A stretch of 64,000 nucleotides of DNA, taken from sequence record NC_027399.1, one strand, 5' to 3'. The position numbers and the translations under genes are program-made. This document shows, in pieces, positions 3,902 to 11,206 of the stretch. How positions within the stretch are numbered: the stretch's first letter is position 1; every line of letters starts with the position of its first letter. Under the pieces are notes generated by a model. It did no database searches, was not told the origin of the DNA, and worked only from the letters and a program-made list of their open reading frames with translations.

Positions 3902-4410
3902 CAACTGTTTACATCGATAAACGTTGTGGATTAGCAATGACAGATTCAAGAGTTACATCTACAATAGAACGTGCTTTTTTTGGTATCTTTCCATTGCAAT
4001 CAAAAAATCAATACAGTAAAGTACTCCAAAAATCAATGTACATCCACGACCGATTATTTTTAAGTTGTGGTACAGTATCTGAGATTAACAAGGTACTAAG
4101 GTATTTGGTTGAACAAAAACCAATAGTACCAAGTAGAAAAGATGGATGCCACTGTCTTTTACTTGATAAAGAGTATTGTATTAATTTTGTAATTCACAAT
4201 GGTGTACTGAAAAAGTTTGTACAATTCATTGATAAAAATTATGTATTCAGTATGGGTAGTGGTTCTTCTCATATGAGAAATACATTTAATGATATCGGTT
4301 CATTAAAATTAAATAATATGTCATTATCGGAATACGTTATTGATGAATTCAGTAAAGTATCAGAAAAAGATATATATACTGATAATAATATTAATTTATA
4401 CAAAATTTGA
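3898..4410 (+). CDS. HslV/proteasome-beta-like Ntn hydrolase (putative)
   Basis: N-terminal M-TT...DSR.T, later K, GSGS and D.YT pattern typical of Thr-nucleophile Ntn proteases. Confidence 0.5.
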   Translation: MTTVYIDKRCGLAMTDSRVTSTIERAFFGIFPLQSKNQYSKVLQKSMYIHDRLFLSCGTVSEINKVLRYLVEQKPIVPSRKDGCHCLLLDKEYCINFVIHNGVLKKFVQFIDKNYVFSMGSGSSHMRNTFNDIGSLKLNNMSLSEYVIDEFSKVSEKDIYTDNNINLYKI

Positions 4411-7623: not shown

Positions 7624-8016
7624 ATGGGATTAGATGTAACTGAAGCTCAAAGAATATTAGAAAACCTCAGAGAAATTAATTCAAAATTTGAACGTAATAA
7701 TCTCTGTACTGAATGGGATAAAAAACTACCCAATAGATTTAGTGAAATCACTAATGAAATTTTATTCAGTACTGGTTTAGTTTGGATTGAACATACTTCT
7801 CTATATAATGTTACGTATCGCCATGAAGGTTATGTTGTTGAATACAATGAATATCTGGATCAGGGTATGAAAGTACTCAAAATGTGGAGTACTGTTTATA
7901 ACGAGCTAGTAATTATCTGGATTAATGACAGTAATGGTGTTGACTTTGGTGATTTAGAAGAAAGCACTACTAAGGTAGCACCGATTTTCGTTGGTTTGTC
8001 TGATAATATCATGTAA
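7624..8016 (+). CDS. Hypothetical protein
   Basis: Co-oriented ORF. Confidence 0.75.
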   Translation: MGLDVTEAQRILENLREINSKFERNNLCTEWDKKLPNRFSEITNEILFSTGLVWIEHTSLYNVTYRHEGYVVEYNEYLDQGMKVLKMWSTVYNELVIIWINDSNGVDFGDLEESTTKVAPIFVGLSDNIM

Positions 8017-8033
8017 GTATTAAAAGAAAGGTT

Positions 8034-8246
8034 TTGACAATGAATGAAAAATTGGCTTTAATTTGGAAAAGTGGTTATGACTTTAAAGTAACACCAAAGG
8101 AACTTAGAGTATTTCGTACTGAATACTGTGAGTATCTTGATTTAGACCAGTATAATACCATTGTTCGTATTGAACACAATGGTGATGTTGAAGGTCATAT
8201 CAGTGAAGTACTTGATAAAGCTATTTCAATTATTGGGGTAAAATGA
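8034..8246 (+). CDS. Hypothetical protein
   Basis: Co-oriented ORF; ATG at 8040 is the likely start. Confidence 0.7.
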   Translation: MTMNEKLALIWKSGYDFKVTPKELRVFRTEYCEYLDLDQYNTIVRIEHNGDVEGHISEVLDKAISIIGVK

Positions 8247-8443
8247 TGATTAGTTTTTATTTGGCAGTGATACTTATTAATGGTAATATCGAACGAACAC
8301 TAGGAAATGGGTTTTATAAAACCCCTGAAGAATGCTATACGGCGACAAATTGGCCTCGTGATAGTGAAACTCGTGAAGAATTCAAATGCATCAAAGCTAC
8401 TGGTGATTTTGTAAATTTCAAAGTGATTGAGGTAAAAAAATGA
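8243..8443 (+). CDS. Hypothetical protein
   Basis: ATGA overlap. Confidence 0.7.
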   Translation: MMISFYLAVILINGNIERTLGNGFYKTPEECYTATNWPRDSETREEFKCIKATGDFVNFKVIEVKK

Positions 8444-8721
8444 TTCTTTCAAAAGAAGAACGTGATATTGTACTACACGCTTTATATTTCCTTGAGAATG
8501 AAAGTATGCATACAGATGCTTCTATGGCGTTGATTGAACGTCTTCAGAAAGAAGAAATGCCAAAGATTTATCGTATCCGTTATCTTGATGGGTCTGGTGG
8601 TGATCGTATTGCCATTGCTGAATCACGAGAAGAAGCAGAACAAATCTTCACTGATAATTATTTGAATCCTTTTTTGATGGAAGAAGTTTGTGAAGTGAAA
8701 AATGGTACATTTATTGGTTGA
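8440..8721 (+). CDS. Hypothetical protein (MILS.EER family)
   Basis: GAGG SD; N-terminus shared with 8891 and 49726. Confidence 0.75.
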   Translation: MILSKEERDIVLHALYFLENESMHTDASMALIERLQKEEMPKIYRIRYLDGSGGDRIAIAESREEAEQIFTDNYLNPFLMEEVCEVKNGTFIG

Positions 8722-8754
8722 CAGATAATAAAAATACGGTATAATGTTTATATC

Positions 8755-8817
8755 AAGACAAGAATGGTTCTATGTGTATCTGTGAATAAGCGGTAGTTCG
8801 ATTCCCCTTCTTGTCTT
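8755..8817 (+). ncRNA. Promoter-driven stem-loop RNA with T-arm-like motif
   Basis: TTGACA(8718)/TATAAT(8740) promoter; 10-bp closing stem AAGACAAGAA/TTCTTGTCTT; internal GGTAGTTCGATTCCCC. Confidence 0.5.
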
Positions 8818-8890
8818 GTCCTTTTTTTTAATTTAACAAAGTAACTATGTTTACTCCACATAATCAATCAGTTGTTATTGAGGTGCAGAA

Positions 8891-9133
8891 ATGATTCTTT
8901 CTAATGAAGAACGTAAAATTGTTTTGCAAGCAATGAGTCTTGTGCATTTAACTACTGAACAAGAGAGAGATTTGTTTGCTCGTCTTAAAGTCGGCAATGA
9001 TTTAATTGAACGCAAAAAAGCCAGTGCTGCTCGCCATAGTCGTTTCAAAGAGCATATGCATACATTATATGGTCCTCTGTCACATTTACATAATCATGAA
9101 TATTATGATTTTTGTAAAAAGAATGAATTTTGA
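8891..9133 (+). CDS. Hypothetical protein (MILS.EER family)
   Basis: GAGGT SD. Confidence 0.75.
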   Translation: MILSNEERKIVLQAMSLVHLTTEQERDLFARLKVGNDLIERKKASAARHSRFKEHMHTLYGPLSHLHNHEYYDFCKKNEF

Positions 9134-9169
9134 GTGATAGTACCGAATCATTGAGATAGAATCTGTATC

Positions 9170-9250
9170 AAGACGGTAGCTCAAGGGAGAGCAGCAGGTA
9201 ATAACGATAAGTTCACCTGTCAGCGTGGATTAAAACACCACCCGTCGTCA
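9170..9250 (+). ncRNA. tRNA-like RNA with 17-nt anticodon loop (pseudo-tRNA)
   Basis: Acceptor AAGACGG/CCGTCGT, D-arm GCTC-AAGGGA-GAGC, stem GCAGG/CCTGT, degenerate T-arm GTGG-ATTAAAACA-CCAC; no CCA. Confidence 0.6.
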
Positions 9251-9259
9251 TTTAATTTA

Positions 9260-9475
9260 ATGAGGTATATTATGTTTACTCCAAACACATCAAATGTAGG
9301 TAAGCGTGTAGTACTGTTAGAAGATGTATCAACACTTCGTGGGACTTTCAGTAAAGGTCACGAGATGACCATCATCGGAGAAACGTCACGTGGTTGGGAT
9401 CTCGAAGATGATGATGGTAATCGCATTTTAGAAGCTGGGATGTTTGGTCATAAAGAATTTAAACTACTTGACTAA
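9260..9475 (+). CDS. Hypothetical protein
   Basis: Co-oriented ORF; start may be ATG 9272. Confidence 0.75.
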   Translation: MRYIMFTPNTSNVGKRVVLLEDVSTLRGTFSKGHEMTIIGETSRGWDLEDDDGNRILEAGMFGHKEFKLLD

Positions 9476-9527
9476 ATTATTCAGTACTGAAGTATAATTT
9501 TGTTGTCTTAACGTGAGGAAATAAAAT

Positions 9528-9656
9528 ATGATTAAAGCTGGTGTATTTGCACTCGGTGTTATGGTTGGTGGTTTTGCTCATATGCTTTATGTTGATCATA
9601 AAGCACCTGAACCTGCACCATTTGTTGAAGTACAAAAGGGATCTGTCGGTAAATAA
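9528..9656 (+). CDS. Small membrane-anchored protein (not in track)
   Basis: GAGGA SD; MIKAGVFALGVMVGGFAH... Confidence 0.6.
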   Translation: MIKAGVFALGVMVGGFAHMLYVDHKAPEPAPFVEVQKGSVGK

Positions 9657-9723
9657 AAATTAAATCATCAAGGTAATATACATAGTGATTGACAAATAAT
9701 AGCAGTGCTGCTAATATAAGAAC

Positions 9724-9791
9724 AAGACGGGGTGATAAATTAACATTAACCTTAATCGATCAACAGGTGGCTGCGGTTATCATCCCGTCTT
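9724..9791 (+). ncRNA. Promoter-driven stem-loop RNA
   Basis: TTGACA(9689)-17-TAATAT; 15-bp closing stem AAGACGGGGTGATAA/TTATCATCCCGTCTT then T-run. Confidence 0.5.
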
Positions 9792-9815
9792 TCCTTTTTA
9801 ACAATGAGGTTTATC

Positions 9816-9956
9816 ATGAGTAAAGATGTTCACGTTCCAGTACAAAATGGTATGTCAGCATGTGGTAAACGCGTGGATTTAACTGGTTGGGTACGTTCAA
9901 TGATCACTTGCAAAAAATGCAAAAAATCTCAAGAATATCTTGAACTACCTAAGTAA
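9816..9956 (+). CDS. Small Cys-rich protein (not in track)
   Basis: GAGGT SD; H..., ACG, TCKKC. Confidence 0.6.
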   Translation: MSKDVHVPVQNGMSACGKRVDLTGWVRSMITCKKCKKSQEYLELPK

Positions 9957-9974
9957 GTGAAGTATAATGTTTAA

Positions 9975-10170
9975 CAAGTGGTGAGCTTTAGTGATACATC
10001 TATTGACGATGCGGGTGTGAGGGTGGCTACCTCAGCAGTGGCGAATTATGTAGCAACTGTGCTGAAAGATGCTAAGACAGTTCGATTCTGTCCACCCGCC
10101 GCACTAAAGGTAGGGTACTAAGTACCAGAAACTAACACGAGGCAGTCGGAATATACGCCTACACCACAAT
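9975..10170 (+). ncRNA. About 195-nt RNA containing a tRNA-like domain (10011..10103)
   Basis: TTGAAC(9940)-17-TATAAT; acceptor GCGGGTG/CACCCGC, D-arm GAGG/CCTC, stem GCAGT/ACTGT with 16-nt loop, canonical T-arm GACAG-TTCGATT-CTGTC; enclosed by CTTTAGTG/CACTAAAG and GTGGTG/CACCAC. Confidence 0.7.
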
Positions 10171-10198
10171 TACTTTTAATTTAATTGAGGAACAAAAC

Positions 10199-10546
10199 AT
10201 GTCAGAATCACTTGTAAATAAAAACTCTCAAGGATTTGTAATTGCAAATAAAAACCCTCAAGGGTTTGTAATTATTGATCTGAATCTTAACAGTGGGAGA
10301 ATGTTCCAAAGTACTGATGCATGTATGCAATTTGACTTCCTCGGTTATGAAATTAGTGTTAGTACAGGTGGTTCAGTACTACAAGGTGGTTTTCTTCAGG
10401 AAATTTTAGTTACTGATCCAGAAGAACGTCCTCACTTCATTCAGGGTTCGGTGCAAGATGCTATTATGTTTGTTATTCAGCGTGAACAAAATAGAAACTT
10501 TAATGAATTTACTAATGCAATGAGTAATAAGATTGAAGAAGTTTAA
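10199..10546 (+). CDS. Hypothetical protein
   Basis: GAGGA SD; internal duplication NKNSQGFVI/NKNPQGFVI. Confidence 0.8.
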   Translation: MSESLVNKNSQGFVIANKNPQGFVIIDLNLNSGRMFQSTDACMQFDFLGYEISVSTGGSVLQGGFLQEILVTDPEERPHFIQGSVQDAIMFVIQREQNRNFNEFTNAMSNKIEEV

Positions 10547-10778
10547 AGTTAATGTTAAGTACTTCACATTCTATAGTTTAGATCCAAATGATTGTCATCC
10601 AGGATTTTTTGAATGCACCCTAATCAGGGAGAATGAATGTGAAGTACTATACTTTATATATAAAATGTATAACAAAATAGTTGTTTATGATTATAGAAAA
10701 AGAAATCAAGAAACCTTATATTTCAATCAAACAATTATTGATTCCTACAGTATAGTTCTCACAGGAGAATATAAATGA
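10533..10778 (+). CDS. Hypothetical protein
   Basis: Co-oriented; start uncertain. Confidence 0.6.
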   Translation: MKKFKVNVKYFTFYSLDPNDCHPGFFECTLIRENECEVLYFIYKMYNKIVVYDYRKRNQETLYFNQTIIDSYSIVLTGEYK

Positions 10779-10957
10779 AGTATTATACTTTTGCATTGAA
10801 ATATATTTCAGCATATTCACCTAATGTGGAAGGTAAATGTGTTATAAAAGCACAAGGAAATAATCCAATTGAAGCCATTATGAAAATAATATCTACTAAT
10901 TCATTTCCAGATAAAAATTCAACGTTTGTACTAATTACTTCAATTGTCATTCAATGA
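10775..10957 (+). CDS. Hypothetical protein
   Basis: AGGAG SD, ATGA overlap. Confidence 0.7.
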   Translation: MKYYTFALKYISAYSPNVEGKCVIKAQGNNPIEAIMKIISTNSFPDKNSTFVLITSIVIQ

Positions 10958-10972
10958 TAATTTGGATATAGT

Positions 10973-11206
10973 ATGAATATATATACAGTAACTGGAATTC
11001 ATATGGCTCAATTTACAGGAACATTTCCATTGATTGGTGGTGTTCCTGTAAATACAATTCCTAAAAAATTTAAATTCCGAATTTCAGCAGATAATGAAGT
11101 ACATGCATATTATAAAGTTATAGAAAAATATAATTTTTATAATACCTGCAATTCTTTTTATATGATTTATGATGTTAAAGTTGACATTCATTATGCCATA
11201 GGATAG
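10973..11206 (+). CDS. Hypothetical protein
   Basis: Co-oriented ORF. Confidence 0.7.
   Translation: MNIYTVTGIHMAQFTGTFPLIGGVPVNTIPKKFKFRISADNEVHAYYKVIEKYNFYNTCNSFYMIYDVKVDIHYAIG

Follow-up and report, generated by a model that had tools for sequence, protein, structure and literature searches.

Background

For about fifty years, clusters of transfer RNA (tRNA) genes in phage genomes have been known to include stable RNAs whose function is unknown, for example species 1 and species 2 of phage T4. A question of this kind is raised by a 64,000-nucleotide (nt) stretch of sequence record NC_027399.1, hereafter the window, which matched Klebsiella jumbo phage K64-1 (Alcyoneusvirus) at 100% and whose coordinates equal the record coordinates minus 186000. 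Four tRNA-like or stem-loop elements, here named E1 to E4, lie close together in it, at the far end of the extended K64-1 tRNA region. An initial annotation, made from the sequence alone, held them to be tRNA mimics with non-functional anticodon arms, argued from their retained pairing against simple decay, and proposed that they act as decoys for enzymes that attack tRNAs. Are these elements the remains of tRNA genes, or do they encode RNAs with a function of their own?

The elements belong to more than one family. E4 is a member of a large, uncatalogued family of structured phage RNAs present in many lineages, and across phage genera both E4 and E2 show purifying and compensatory selection. 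For these two, simple tRNA decay is rejected, whereas for E1 it is plausible.

Results and discussion

E4 represents a family made of a conserved frame and a tRNA-like insert

Each of the four elements was found where the initial annotation had placed it, with all the features ascribed to it. The inner domain of E4 follows the order of acceptor, D arm, anticodon-position arm, variable region, T arm and acceptor. Its perfect acceptor stem has 7 bp, GCGGGUG (10011-10017) being paired with CACCCGC (10093-10099); the D arm is GAGG...CCUC, the anticodon-position stem GCAGU/ACUGU (5 bp) carries a 16-nt loop, the block GCUGAAAGAUGCUAA occupies the variable-arm position, and the T arm reads GACAG-UUCGAUU-CUGUC (10076-10092). 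The two extra helices said to enclose this domain in an RNA of about 195 nt correspond to P1 and P0 (Table 1). No CCA follows the acceptor, which says little here because several genuine K64-1 tRNAs also do without an encoded one: in K64-1 and its sister phage RaK2, the tRNAs Arg(UCU), Asn, Ser(GCU) and Thr lack it and must depend on CCA-adding enzyme.

Homologues of E4 with about 77% identity were recovered by BLAST from tRNA clusters of unrelated phages, namely Yersinia phages fHe-Yen9-04 and P778, Pectobacterium phage CBB, phi92-like Klebsiella and Citrobacter phages, and Serratia phage ChuuTotoro, in which the inner part had been called tRNA-Phe. Further carriers include the Felix-O1-like phages phiEa21-4, phiEa104 and SE5, Erwinia ChrisDB-like jumbo phages, and Serratia phages 2050HW and Moabite; in their records the site is almost always unannotated, a few having a 'hypothetical protein' call. 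Independent folds of seven homologues gave one architecture, running from P0 through an unpaired AGC, P1, a small hairpin, the tRNA-like body, the 3' strand of P1, GG(U/G)AGC and hairpin Hp2 to an invariant single-stranded GAGnAAnUAACACG, hairpin Hp3 and the 3' strand of P0. A scan for the motif TAACACGAGGC-N6-20-GCCTAC matched 50 IMG/VR contigs (4.5-381 kb), with about 40 distinct instances fitting this architecture. Among 59 matches of the same motif in bacterial genomes, three are true and carry the full motif (an Acidobacteriaceae metagenome-assembled genome, Limoniibacter and Bosea), and the others look like chance.

A covariance model, R1, was built from 14 sequences and identified 48 full-length members among the loci examined, with E-values from 1e-39 to 7e-9; it found no family member in PBECO4, Munch or T4, and its inner part weakly matches true tRNAs, e.g. 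T4 tRNA-Leu (E = 2e-4). E4 of K64-1 scores 146.5 bits (E = 2.5e-33) across all 190 model positions. It has P0, P1, Hp2 and Hp3 in order together with AGC, GG(U/G)AG, UAACACGAGGCG and CGCCUAC, and departs from the family by a GGUAGG where GGUAGC is usual and by a single bulged A in Hp3. The motif scan and R1 found exactly one copy in K64-1.

The frame common to the family comprises four helices (P0, P1, Hp2 and Hp3), about 94 nt and about 25 invariant bases. At the apex of P1 it holds an insert of 8 to 185 nt, which in enterobacterial phages amounts to an almost entire tRNA body. The tRNA-like part is missing from minimal members of 94-130 nt, which makes the frame the conserved unit and the tRNA body an accessory. 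In one member (locus L036, 8367-8547, minus strand) the inner domain was called a regular tRNA-Val(UAC) by ARAGORN, and some inserts may be near-canonical tRNAs enclosed by the frame.

The non-tRNA frame, the T arm and the acceptor-like stem make up the invariant part of the family, while the arm at the anticodon position is the most variable, being a hairpin with a UUCG tetraloop in phi1_175008 and Tr1 and carrying unrelated 10-16-nt loops elsewhere. This distribution bears directly on the proposal that the elements are decoys for anticodon nucleases or tRNA-modifying toxins such as PrrC, PARIS, retron effectors or CapRel. Phage tRNAs are known to counter tRNA-targeting defences, the tRNA-Tyr of T5 and T6 countering Retron-Eco7 and Septu, which cut tRNA-Tyr in its variable arm (PMC13096335). 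The block GCUGAAAGAUGCUAA is found at the variable-arm position in K64-1, fHe-Yen9-04, the IMG/VR relative L034 (one base different), phi1_175008 and Tr1, and AUCUAA, kept in an element of RaK2 (B', see below), resembles the 3' half of the anticodon loop of tRNA-Arg(UCU). However, the arm that such a decoy would offer is the least conserved part of the family and is absent from the minimal members, loops of 10-17 nt are unlike any anticodon loop, the base equivalent to the discriminator is paired, leaving no free 3' CCA end for acceptor-targeting toxins, and the elements have no linked gene of defence or counter-defence. The decoy proposal thus has no specific support and, judged from the sequences, conflicts with where conservation lies; we consider it very unlikely.

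Rfam contains no match for the family, the minimal members included at E <= 5, apart from tRNAs and chance matches, and full-text searches among papers available without a subscription retrieved no published description of the motif or of such an RNA in phage tRNA arrays. At 21 of 37 loci a canonical tRNA is present on the same strand no more than 13 nt away (spacing 2-13 nt), and 13 of the 37, K64-1 included, have no adjacent canonical tRNA. A tRNA with a CUA anticodon, which would read amber codons, was observed 3-10 nt upstream of the family member in fHe-Yen9-04 (L011:1417-1489), CBB (L012:1316-1388) and L034.

Covariation supports the E4 fold and reveals a tertiary pair

The pairing of E4 is strongly supported by covariation among homologous loci. 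In a MAFFT alignment of the 14 sequences, pairing holds in 96% of cells, and 20 of the 36 pairs have compensatory changes on both sides, a number reached by none of 500 shuffles, slid controls giving at most nine pairs. The R1 alignment of 49 rows has 94.5% of cells paired and compensatory changes in 28 of 36 pairs; this alignment was fitted to the model and favours the model's structure, and the 14-sequence MAFFT alignment agrees with it. All eight pairs of P1 covary in the 49 rows, with up to five pair types at one position, and the T arm of E4 covaries in the family as well.

A mutual-information scan detected a further pair, outside the model, between the junction and the loop of Hp3 (Table 1). 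The column pair 276/356, involving base 3 of the Hp3 loop, is UA in 19, CG in 12, AU in 7, UG in 2, GU in 2 and CU in 1, i.e. three Watson-Crick types, and the column pair 277/355, involving loop base 2, is GC in 41 and UA in 2. This contact ties Hp3 to the top of P1 and takes up the discriminator-equivalent base, so that E4 has no free acceptor end. The invariant junction and the tertiary pair point to a precise three-dimensional fold.

Invariant bases at a multi-helix junction combined with a tertiary pair are typical of ribozymes and riboswitches. The frame might accordingly be read as a catalytic or ligand-binding RNA taking part in the maturation of phage tRNA arrays, e.g. by cleaving itself beside a tRNA in the manner of HDV-like theta ribozymes. 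The roughly 25 invariant bases and the covarying pair would suit this idea, as would the distance of 2-13 nt to neighbouring tRNAs and the position behind a suppressor-type tRNA in fHe-Yen9-04, CBB and L034. On the other side, no ribozyme family of Rfam is matched, the fold does not form a nested double pseudoknot, the RNA and its neighbouring tRNA are variably spaced, and 13 of the 37 loci lack an adjacent canonical tRNA; we regard it as highly improbable. Taken more broadly, as a new class of functional RNA with a complex fold (ribozyme, ligand sensor or protein scaffold) that resides in the tRNA arrays of phages from many bacterial phyla and aids or controls phage tRNA maturation or a tRNA-centred conflict with the host, the proposal is rather unlikely. 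If it were true, the tRNA-like insert would be an add-on recruiting tRNA-handling enzymes.

The interior of E2 is conserved between genera

The fold of E2 by itself yields four helices, in agreement with the cloverleaf and 17-nt loop described before: an acceptor-like stem GACGG/CCGUC, a canonical-looking D arm UAGCUCAAGGGAGAGCA, an anticodon-position stem GCAGG/CCUGU with a conserved 17-nt loop UAAUAACGAUAAGUUCA, and a non-canonical T-position arm, GUGG-AUUAAAACA-CCAC, with the 9-nt loop AUUAAAACA. E2 represents a second family, which K64-1 has in common with Munch-like jumbo phages. Salmonella phages Munch, 7t3, SE_PL and PHA46 and Klebsiella phage fENko-Kae01 show 92-94% identity over the interior, which takes in the D arm, the T-position arm and the stem with its loop UAAUAACGAUAAG(U/A)UCA, whereas the flanks cannot be aligned between genera. 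K64-1 has GACGG/CCGUC as its closing stem where the Munch group has GUUGAG/CUCAAC; both are fully paired, and the D stem shows a one-sided change from C-G to U-G.

These features fit a functional RNA that would present its loop as a conserved surface, and, from the pattern of identity, the 17-nt loop is likely to be the working surface. A search of the K64-1 genome for an antisense target of the loop gave no more matches than a reversed-pattern control. In Munch and 7t3 the E2 homologue lies upstream of an annotated tRNA-Leu gene. The Munch homologue (L127:1186-1290) is enclosed by an extra outer helix, AUUCUGG... / ...UAGAAUCC, and pairing of leader with trailer around a tRNA-like core was thus observed in this homologue, in E4 and in B'.

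E1 and E3 are lineage-specific and keep their closing helices

In RaK2, two elements at the corresponding loci, here A' and B', are annotated as pseudo 'tRNA-OTHER'. E1, described in the initial annotation as a closing stem with GUUCGAUUCC, has an 11-bp stem (about 8754-8764 with 8807-8817) and is a paralogue of B' without the D arm; B' is a more complete cloverleaf, in which the D arm and the T loop are canonical, the loop at the anticodon position has 11 nt and the closing helix 13 bp. Phages KP13-7 and Muenster contain both E1 and B', and the closing helices of the two differ by a compensatory two-sided swap of U-A to A-U. E3, recorded before as a long stem, has a closing stem of 15 bp and no recognisable tRNA feature, and was found in Alcyoneusvirus only. 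It is identical between K64-1 and RaK2 at 68 of 68 nt, between flanking genes of 90-95% identity, and its single variant, in KP13-7, changes a G-U pair to A-U.

Compared across the elements, loops at the anticodon position measure 16 nt in E4, 17 nt in E2 and 11 nt in B', E1 and E3 having no such arm. The T arm (UUCRANY loop and 5-bp stem) is complete in E4, is reduced in E1 to the loop and a stem with two mismatches in its five pairs, and is absent from E2 and E3. Against shuffled sequences the folds have z-scores of -3.6 (E1), -3.5 (E2), -4.3 (E3) and -2.0 (E4). A parent among the K64-1 tRNAs could be indicated only by weak similarity, that of B' and E2 to tRNA-Arg(UCU) (z ~3), which B' resembles in its D arm and a UCUAA stretch. 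The closing helices of E1 and E3 (11-15 bp) are longer than a tRNA acceptor stem. They also differ from intrinsic terminators, as they enclose about 38-41 nt and are separated by a spacer from the U run, in place of a compact GC-rich hairpin with a 3-8-nt loop; a terminator scan listed none at the ends of E1 (8817) and E3 (9791).

Together these data allow the null explanation to be weighed, namely that the elements are decayed tRNA genes without a function of their own, in which the remaining pairing is residual. In its favour, A' and B' were called tRNA pseudogenes by the RaK2 annotators, E1 has lost its D arm and its T stem varies among near-identical phages, the T loop of E2 is non-canonical, nothing recognisable of a tRNA is kept in E3, and genuine tRNA genes are present 15-18 kb upstream. 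Decay would not, however, account for covariation in 48 members from unrelated phages together with an invariant non-tRNA core (E4), nor for an interior conserved across genera between unalignable flanks and within a re-paired closing stem (E2). Even in E1 and E3 the closing helices are perfectly kept, with changes that only preserve pairs (two-sided between E1 and B', one-sided in E3), and the identity of E3 exceeds that of its neighbouring genes. For the set as a whole, decay is unlikely in our view: the earlier argument from retained pairing stands for E4 and E2, and for E1 decay stays plausible.

Table 1. Positions of the elements, their parts and related genes (window coordinates unless a record or another locus is named)
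Feature	Position	Strand	Description or evidence
E1 promoter	8718-8745	+	sigma-70-type TTGACA-16-TATAAT; 12/12 positions match
E1	8755-8817	+	11-bp closing stem, enlarged loop region, T-loop remnant GUUCGAUUCC (8796-8805)
E2 weak promoter-like site	9134-9162	+	GTGATA-17-TAGAAT; 9/12 positions match
E2, cloverleaf-like RNA	9170-9250	+	fold z = -3.5; cross-genus conservation
E3 promoter	9689-9717	+	TTGACA-17-TAATAT with TG; 10/12 positions match
E3	9724-9791	+	15-bp closing stem AAGACGGGGUGAUAA / UUAUCAUCCCGUCUU, 38-nt poorly paired interior, then U-rich tract
E4 promoter	9940-9968	+	TTGAAC-17-TATAAT; 10/12 positions match
E4, member of the family with frame and tRNA-like insert	9976-10170	+	covariance model R1, covariation, homologue folds
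E4 P0	9978-9983 with 10162-10167	+	outer helix
E4 AGC	9984-9986	+	frame motif
E4 P1	9986-9993 with 10103-10110	+	outer helix
E4 hairpin Hp1	9997-10011	+	
E4 inner tRNA-like domain	10011-10100	+	acceptor-like, D, anticodon-position and T arms
E4 tertiary pair	C10100-G10148, G10101-C10147	+	two bases 3' of the inner acceptor-like stem with Hp3 loop bases 2-3
E4 hairpin Hp2	10114-10126	+	
E4 invariant single-stranded stretch	10127-10139	+	AGAAACUAACACG
E4 hairpin Hp3	10140-10160	+	
Paralogous genes of 80-93 amino acids	8440-8721, 8891-9133; L001:3041-3322, 3956-4201; L007:2326-2604		
Seven canonical K64-1 tRNA genes (Leu, Gly, Arg, Ser x2, Met, Asn)	record 177141-180428 (L136:5142-8429)		ARAGORN

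The locus, its promoters and its cassettes

ARAGORN called no tRNA or transfer-messenger RNA (tmRNA) in the 64-kb window and no tRNA at the loci orthologous to E1-E4. Rfam 15 returned nothing at the gathering score and, at E <= 10 for positions 8000-11000, a chance match to a small nucleolar RNA only, with RF00005 absent. Both programs thus recognised none of the elements as a tRNA. The genuine tRNA genes of K64-1 were located by ARAGORN at 177.1-180.4 kb of the record, 15-18 kb upstream of the cluster, and RaK2 has the same set plus Thr. The RefSeq record of K64-1 lists none of these seven genes, and over their interval (177141-180428) has many open reading frames (ORFs) of 20-35 codons, several of which overlap the tRNAs. 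Small RefSeq ORFs were likewise seen to overlie E1 (gp317, 8748-8861, minus strand), E3 (gp321, 9689-9823) and E4 (gp323, 9978-10121). The gp323 call is probably spurious, since the covariation and the non-triplet gaps of E4 homologues fit an RNA, unlike a protein. The K64-1 annotation can be corrected on both counts, the probably spurious gp323 call and the missing tRNA genes.

E1, E3 and E4 have the three clear promoters reported earlier, and E2 a weak one; the AAGAC start noted in three elements occurs in E1 (8755), E2 (9170) and E3 (9724). The -35 hexamer of the E1 promoter overlaps the stop codon of the upstream gene 8440-8721. Such an overlap is seen for the paralogous upstream genes gp316, gp318 and, in RaK2, ORF253 and ORF256, and explains the joint duplication of gene and cassette. 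The genes concerned are paralogues that begin MILS(K/N)EER... in Klebsiella phages and MSFSKEER... in Escherichia phage PBECO4, the two of K64-1 having no Pfam family, and the succession of such a gene, a promoter with its -35 element over the stop codon and a tRNA-like or hairpin RNA was observed as a recurring cassette. From this arrangement, the locus is a shuffled set of cassettes each made of a promoter and an RNA.

Several further observations concern these cassettes. A' sits in RaK2 behind the same promoter as E1 in K64-1. Its enlarged 20-nt loop, ACAGCAUAAU(G/C)GUACUCGUC, is borne by a cloverleaf-like scaffold in RaK2 (L001:3356-3446) versus a plain 12-bp hairpin in PBECO4 (L007:2643-2694), i.e. 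it is kept across genera on differing scaffolds. In RaK2, KP13-7 and OU509535, E4 follows directly behind B' and the B' promoter, at 6 nt in RaK2 and KP13-7, and in Muenster B' also adjoins E4; in K64-1, E4 has no canonical tRNA neighbour within the window. A 15-codon mini-ORF, MFTPHNQSVVIEVQK (8848-8895), begins like gp319 (MFTPNTSNVGK...) and overlaps the start of gp318, and looks like the stump of a gp319-like gene cut by insertion of the gp318 cassette. At window 9481-9705, a relative on a wastewater contig (run X3) has 2 nt in place of 223 nt; the loss takes gp320, a membrane ORF of 42 amino acids, and part of the E3 promoter, and shows cassette turnover in natural populations.

What the RNAs may do

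That the elements are tRNA-derived, non-decoding RNAs, as opposed to random stem-loops, is supported by the results above. We think it rather probable, with room for doubt, that they are stable, non-decoding RNAs with locked ends that engage the tRNA-handling machinery. Transcription, processing, stability and binding partners of E1-E4 are here inferred. In outline, tRNA-derived genes at the far end of the tRNA region would have been turned into non-decoding small RNAs, each placed shortly behind a promoter of the kind that the host RNA polymerase reads, with both the 5' and the 3' end held in a helix. Since the E4-family RNA fills a tRNA slot in the arrays of other phages, it is probably released by the ordinary tRNA-processing enzymes, its paired ends protecting it. 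The RNAs would then offer a tRNA-shaped or loop surface to some tRNA-handling factor of host or phage, without delivering an amino acid; candidate partners are RNase P, modification enzymes, the CCA-adding enzyme and a tRNA-targeting nuclease or toxin. E1 and E3 would be lineage-specific derivatives in which the closing helix is the part kept. In the related jumbo phage PA5oct, which depends on the host RNA polymerase, abundant non-coding RNAs are expressed (PMC7318152).

A number of observations weigh against this reading. No protein cluster recurs at more than two of the 37 loci within 4 kb of the RNA, and Pfam gave nothing above cut-off for eight flanking small proteins. Among five phages that are 97-99% identical here, the 5' strand of the E1 T stem is UAG, CAG, UGG or UGC, and the T stem is therefore not maintained. 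E4 is identical within Alcyoneusvirus save for its first base, but the downstream gp324 is likewise 99.1% identical between K64-1 and RaK2, so that the near-identity of E4 is not special and a claim of its excess conservation in Alcyoneusvirus was withdrawn. Public runs with K64-1 element sequences were wastewater 'RNA' libraries only, in the form of low-depth contigs probably containing phage DNA, which show no enrichment over E1-E4 and cannot separate RNA from phage DNA. Finally, in K64-1 an ORF starts 20-75 nt downstream of each of E1 to E4, and the elements may act in cis.

This last point makes a cis-acting reading viable for E1 to E3 in K64-1, as 5' leaders of early mRNAs whose helix, taking in the first transcribed bases, would shield the downstream message from 5'-end-dependent decay, provide a processing site for RNase P, III or E, or act as an attenuator ahead of the next gene. 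In K64-1, indeed, every element has a promoter before it and an ORF behind it, and the closing helix begins no more than 3 nt from the probable transcription start. U-rich tracts are present after E1 and E3. Behind E2, E3, E4, A' and the PBECO4 hairpin come a U-rich run, AAUGAGG or a close variant, and then an AUG about 20-30 nt after the element, whereas E1 has a U run and the 15-codon mini-ORF in their place. In contrast, the E4 family elsewhere stands in tRNA arrays flanked by tRNAs instead of ORFs, the Munch copy of E2 precedes a tRNA-Leu gene, and gp319, which lies downstream of E2, has homologues that in RaK2 stand behind another element and in PBECO4 behind no element at all. The leaders of other strong promoters in the vicinity are short and without structure, and the scan picked up no terminator at E1 or E3. 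As an account of the elements in general, we judge a role as leaders unlikely and retain that of stable RNAs engaging the tRNA-handling machinery. A complementarity of 8 nt between AACACGAG and 16S ribosomal RNA is, by rough estimate, as readily ascribed to chance as not, and was given no weight.

Significance and comparison with known systems

The RNA type represented by E4 is not a curiosity of a single phage, as it extends over Felix-O1-like and phi92-like phages, ChuuTotoro, several groups of jumbo phages and uncultured viral contigs, and its precise fold makes its function directly testable in tractable laboratory phages. The K64-1 locus in addition displays, adjacent to one another in one genome, stages from a tRNA gene to a non-decoding RNA, from a near-complete cloverleaf to a bare hairpin.

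The genes rnaC (species 1) and rnaD (species 2) of T4 resemble the elements in being non-decoding and in lying in a phage tRNA cluster on the tRNA strand, and rnaC has a canonical T arm, CCGGG-UUCGAAU-CCCGG, near its 3' end. However, T4 and E4 share no similarity in sequence or by the model, R1 matching in T4 only the tRNA-Leu, through the inner domain, and T4 lacks the frame motifs AGC, GGUAGC and UAACACGAGGCG. Homology with rnaC and rnaD was ruled out, and they are the nearest analogues by context only.

The YrlA-type Y RNAs, which also occur in phages, combine a protein-binding module with a non-decoding tRNA-like module having T and D arms (Chen et al. 2014, PMC4201824), and E4 is similar to them in joining a conserved module to a tRNA-like one. 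YrlA is circularly permuted (T arm, acceptor-like stem-loop, D arm), is encoded beside Ro60 and carries the motif GNCGAAN0-1G (PMC4201824), whereas E4 has the normal tRNA order and no YrlA match in Rfam. The K64-1 E4 loop contains GGCGAAUU, but no G follows as the motif requires, and homologues do not conserve the stretch. Ro60 (PF05731, TROVE) is absent from K64-1, fHe-Yen9-04, CBB, phi1_175008 and ChuuTotoro, control genomes being positive, and with no Ro60 in five carrier phages an identity with Y RNAs was dropped.

With canonical phage tRNAs (RF00005), the inner domain of E4, E2 and B' share the cloverleaf topology, and E4 and B' also keep the T loop GUUCGAUUC; as in several genuine K64-1 tRNAs, no CCA is encoded in the elements. 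They differ in their anticodon loops of 11-17 nt and in being rejected, like the other elements, by ARAGORN and Rfam; the closing helices are 11-15 bp long or nested in further helices, and in E4 the discriminator-equivalent base is paired.

The theta ribozymes, resembling those of hepatitis delta virus (HDV), that Kienbeck et al. are said to have reported in 2024 are small structured RNAs directly beside phage tRNAs, often suppressor tRNAs. They reportedly form nested double pseudoknots of about 50-70 nt and cleave at their own 5' end, whereas the E4 frame has a four-way junction with one loop-junction pair and matches no HDV family in Rfam. The tmRNA, lastly, is like E4 a large RNA with a tRNA-like domain of acceptor stem and T arm; it builds this domain from both ends of the RNA, with a CCA end and an internal tag reading frame, whereas in E4 the tRNA-like part is internal and closed by P1 and P0.

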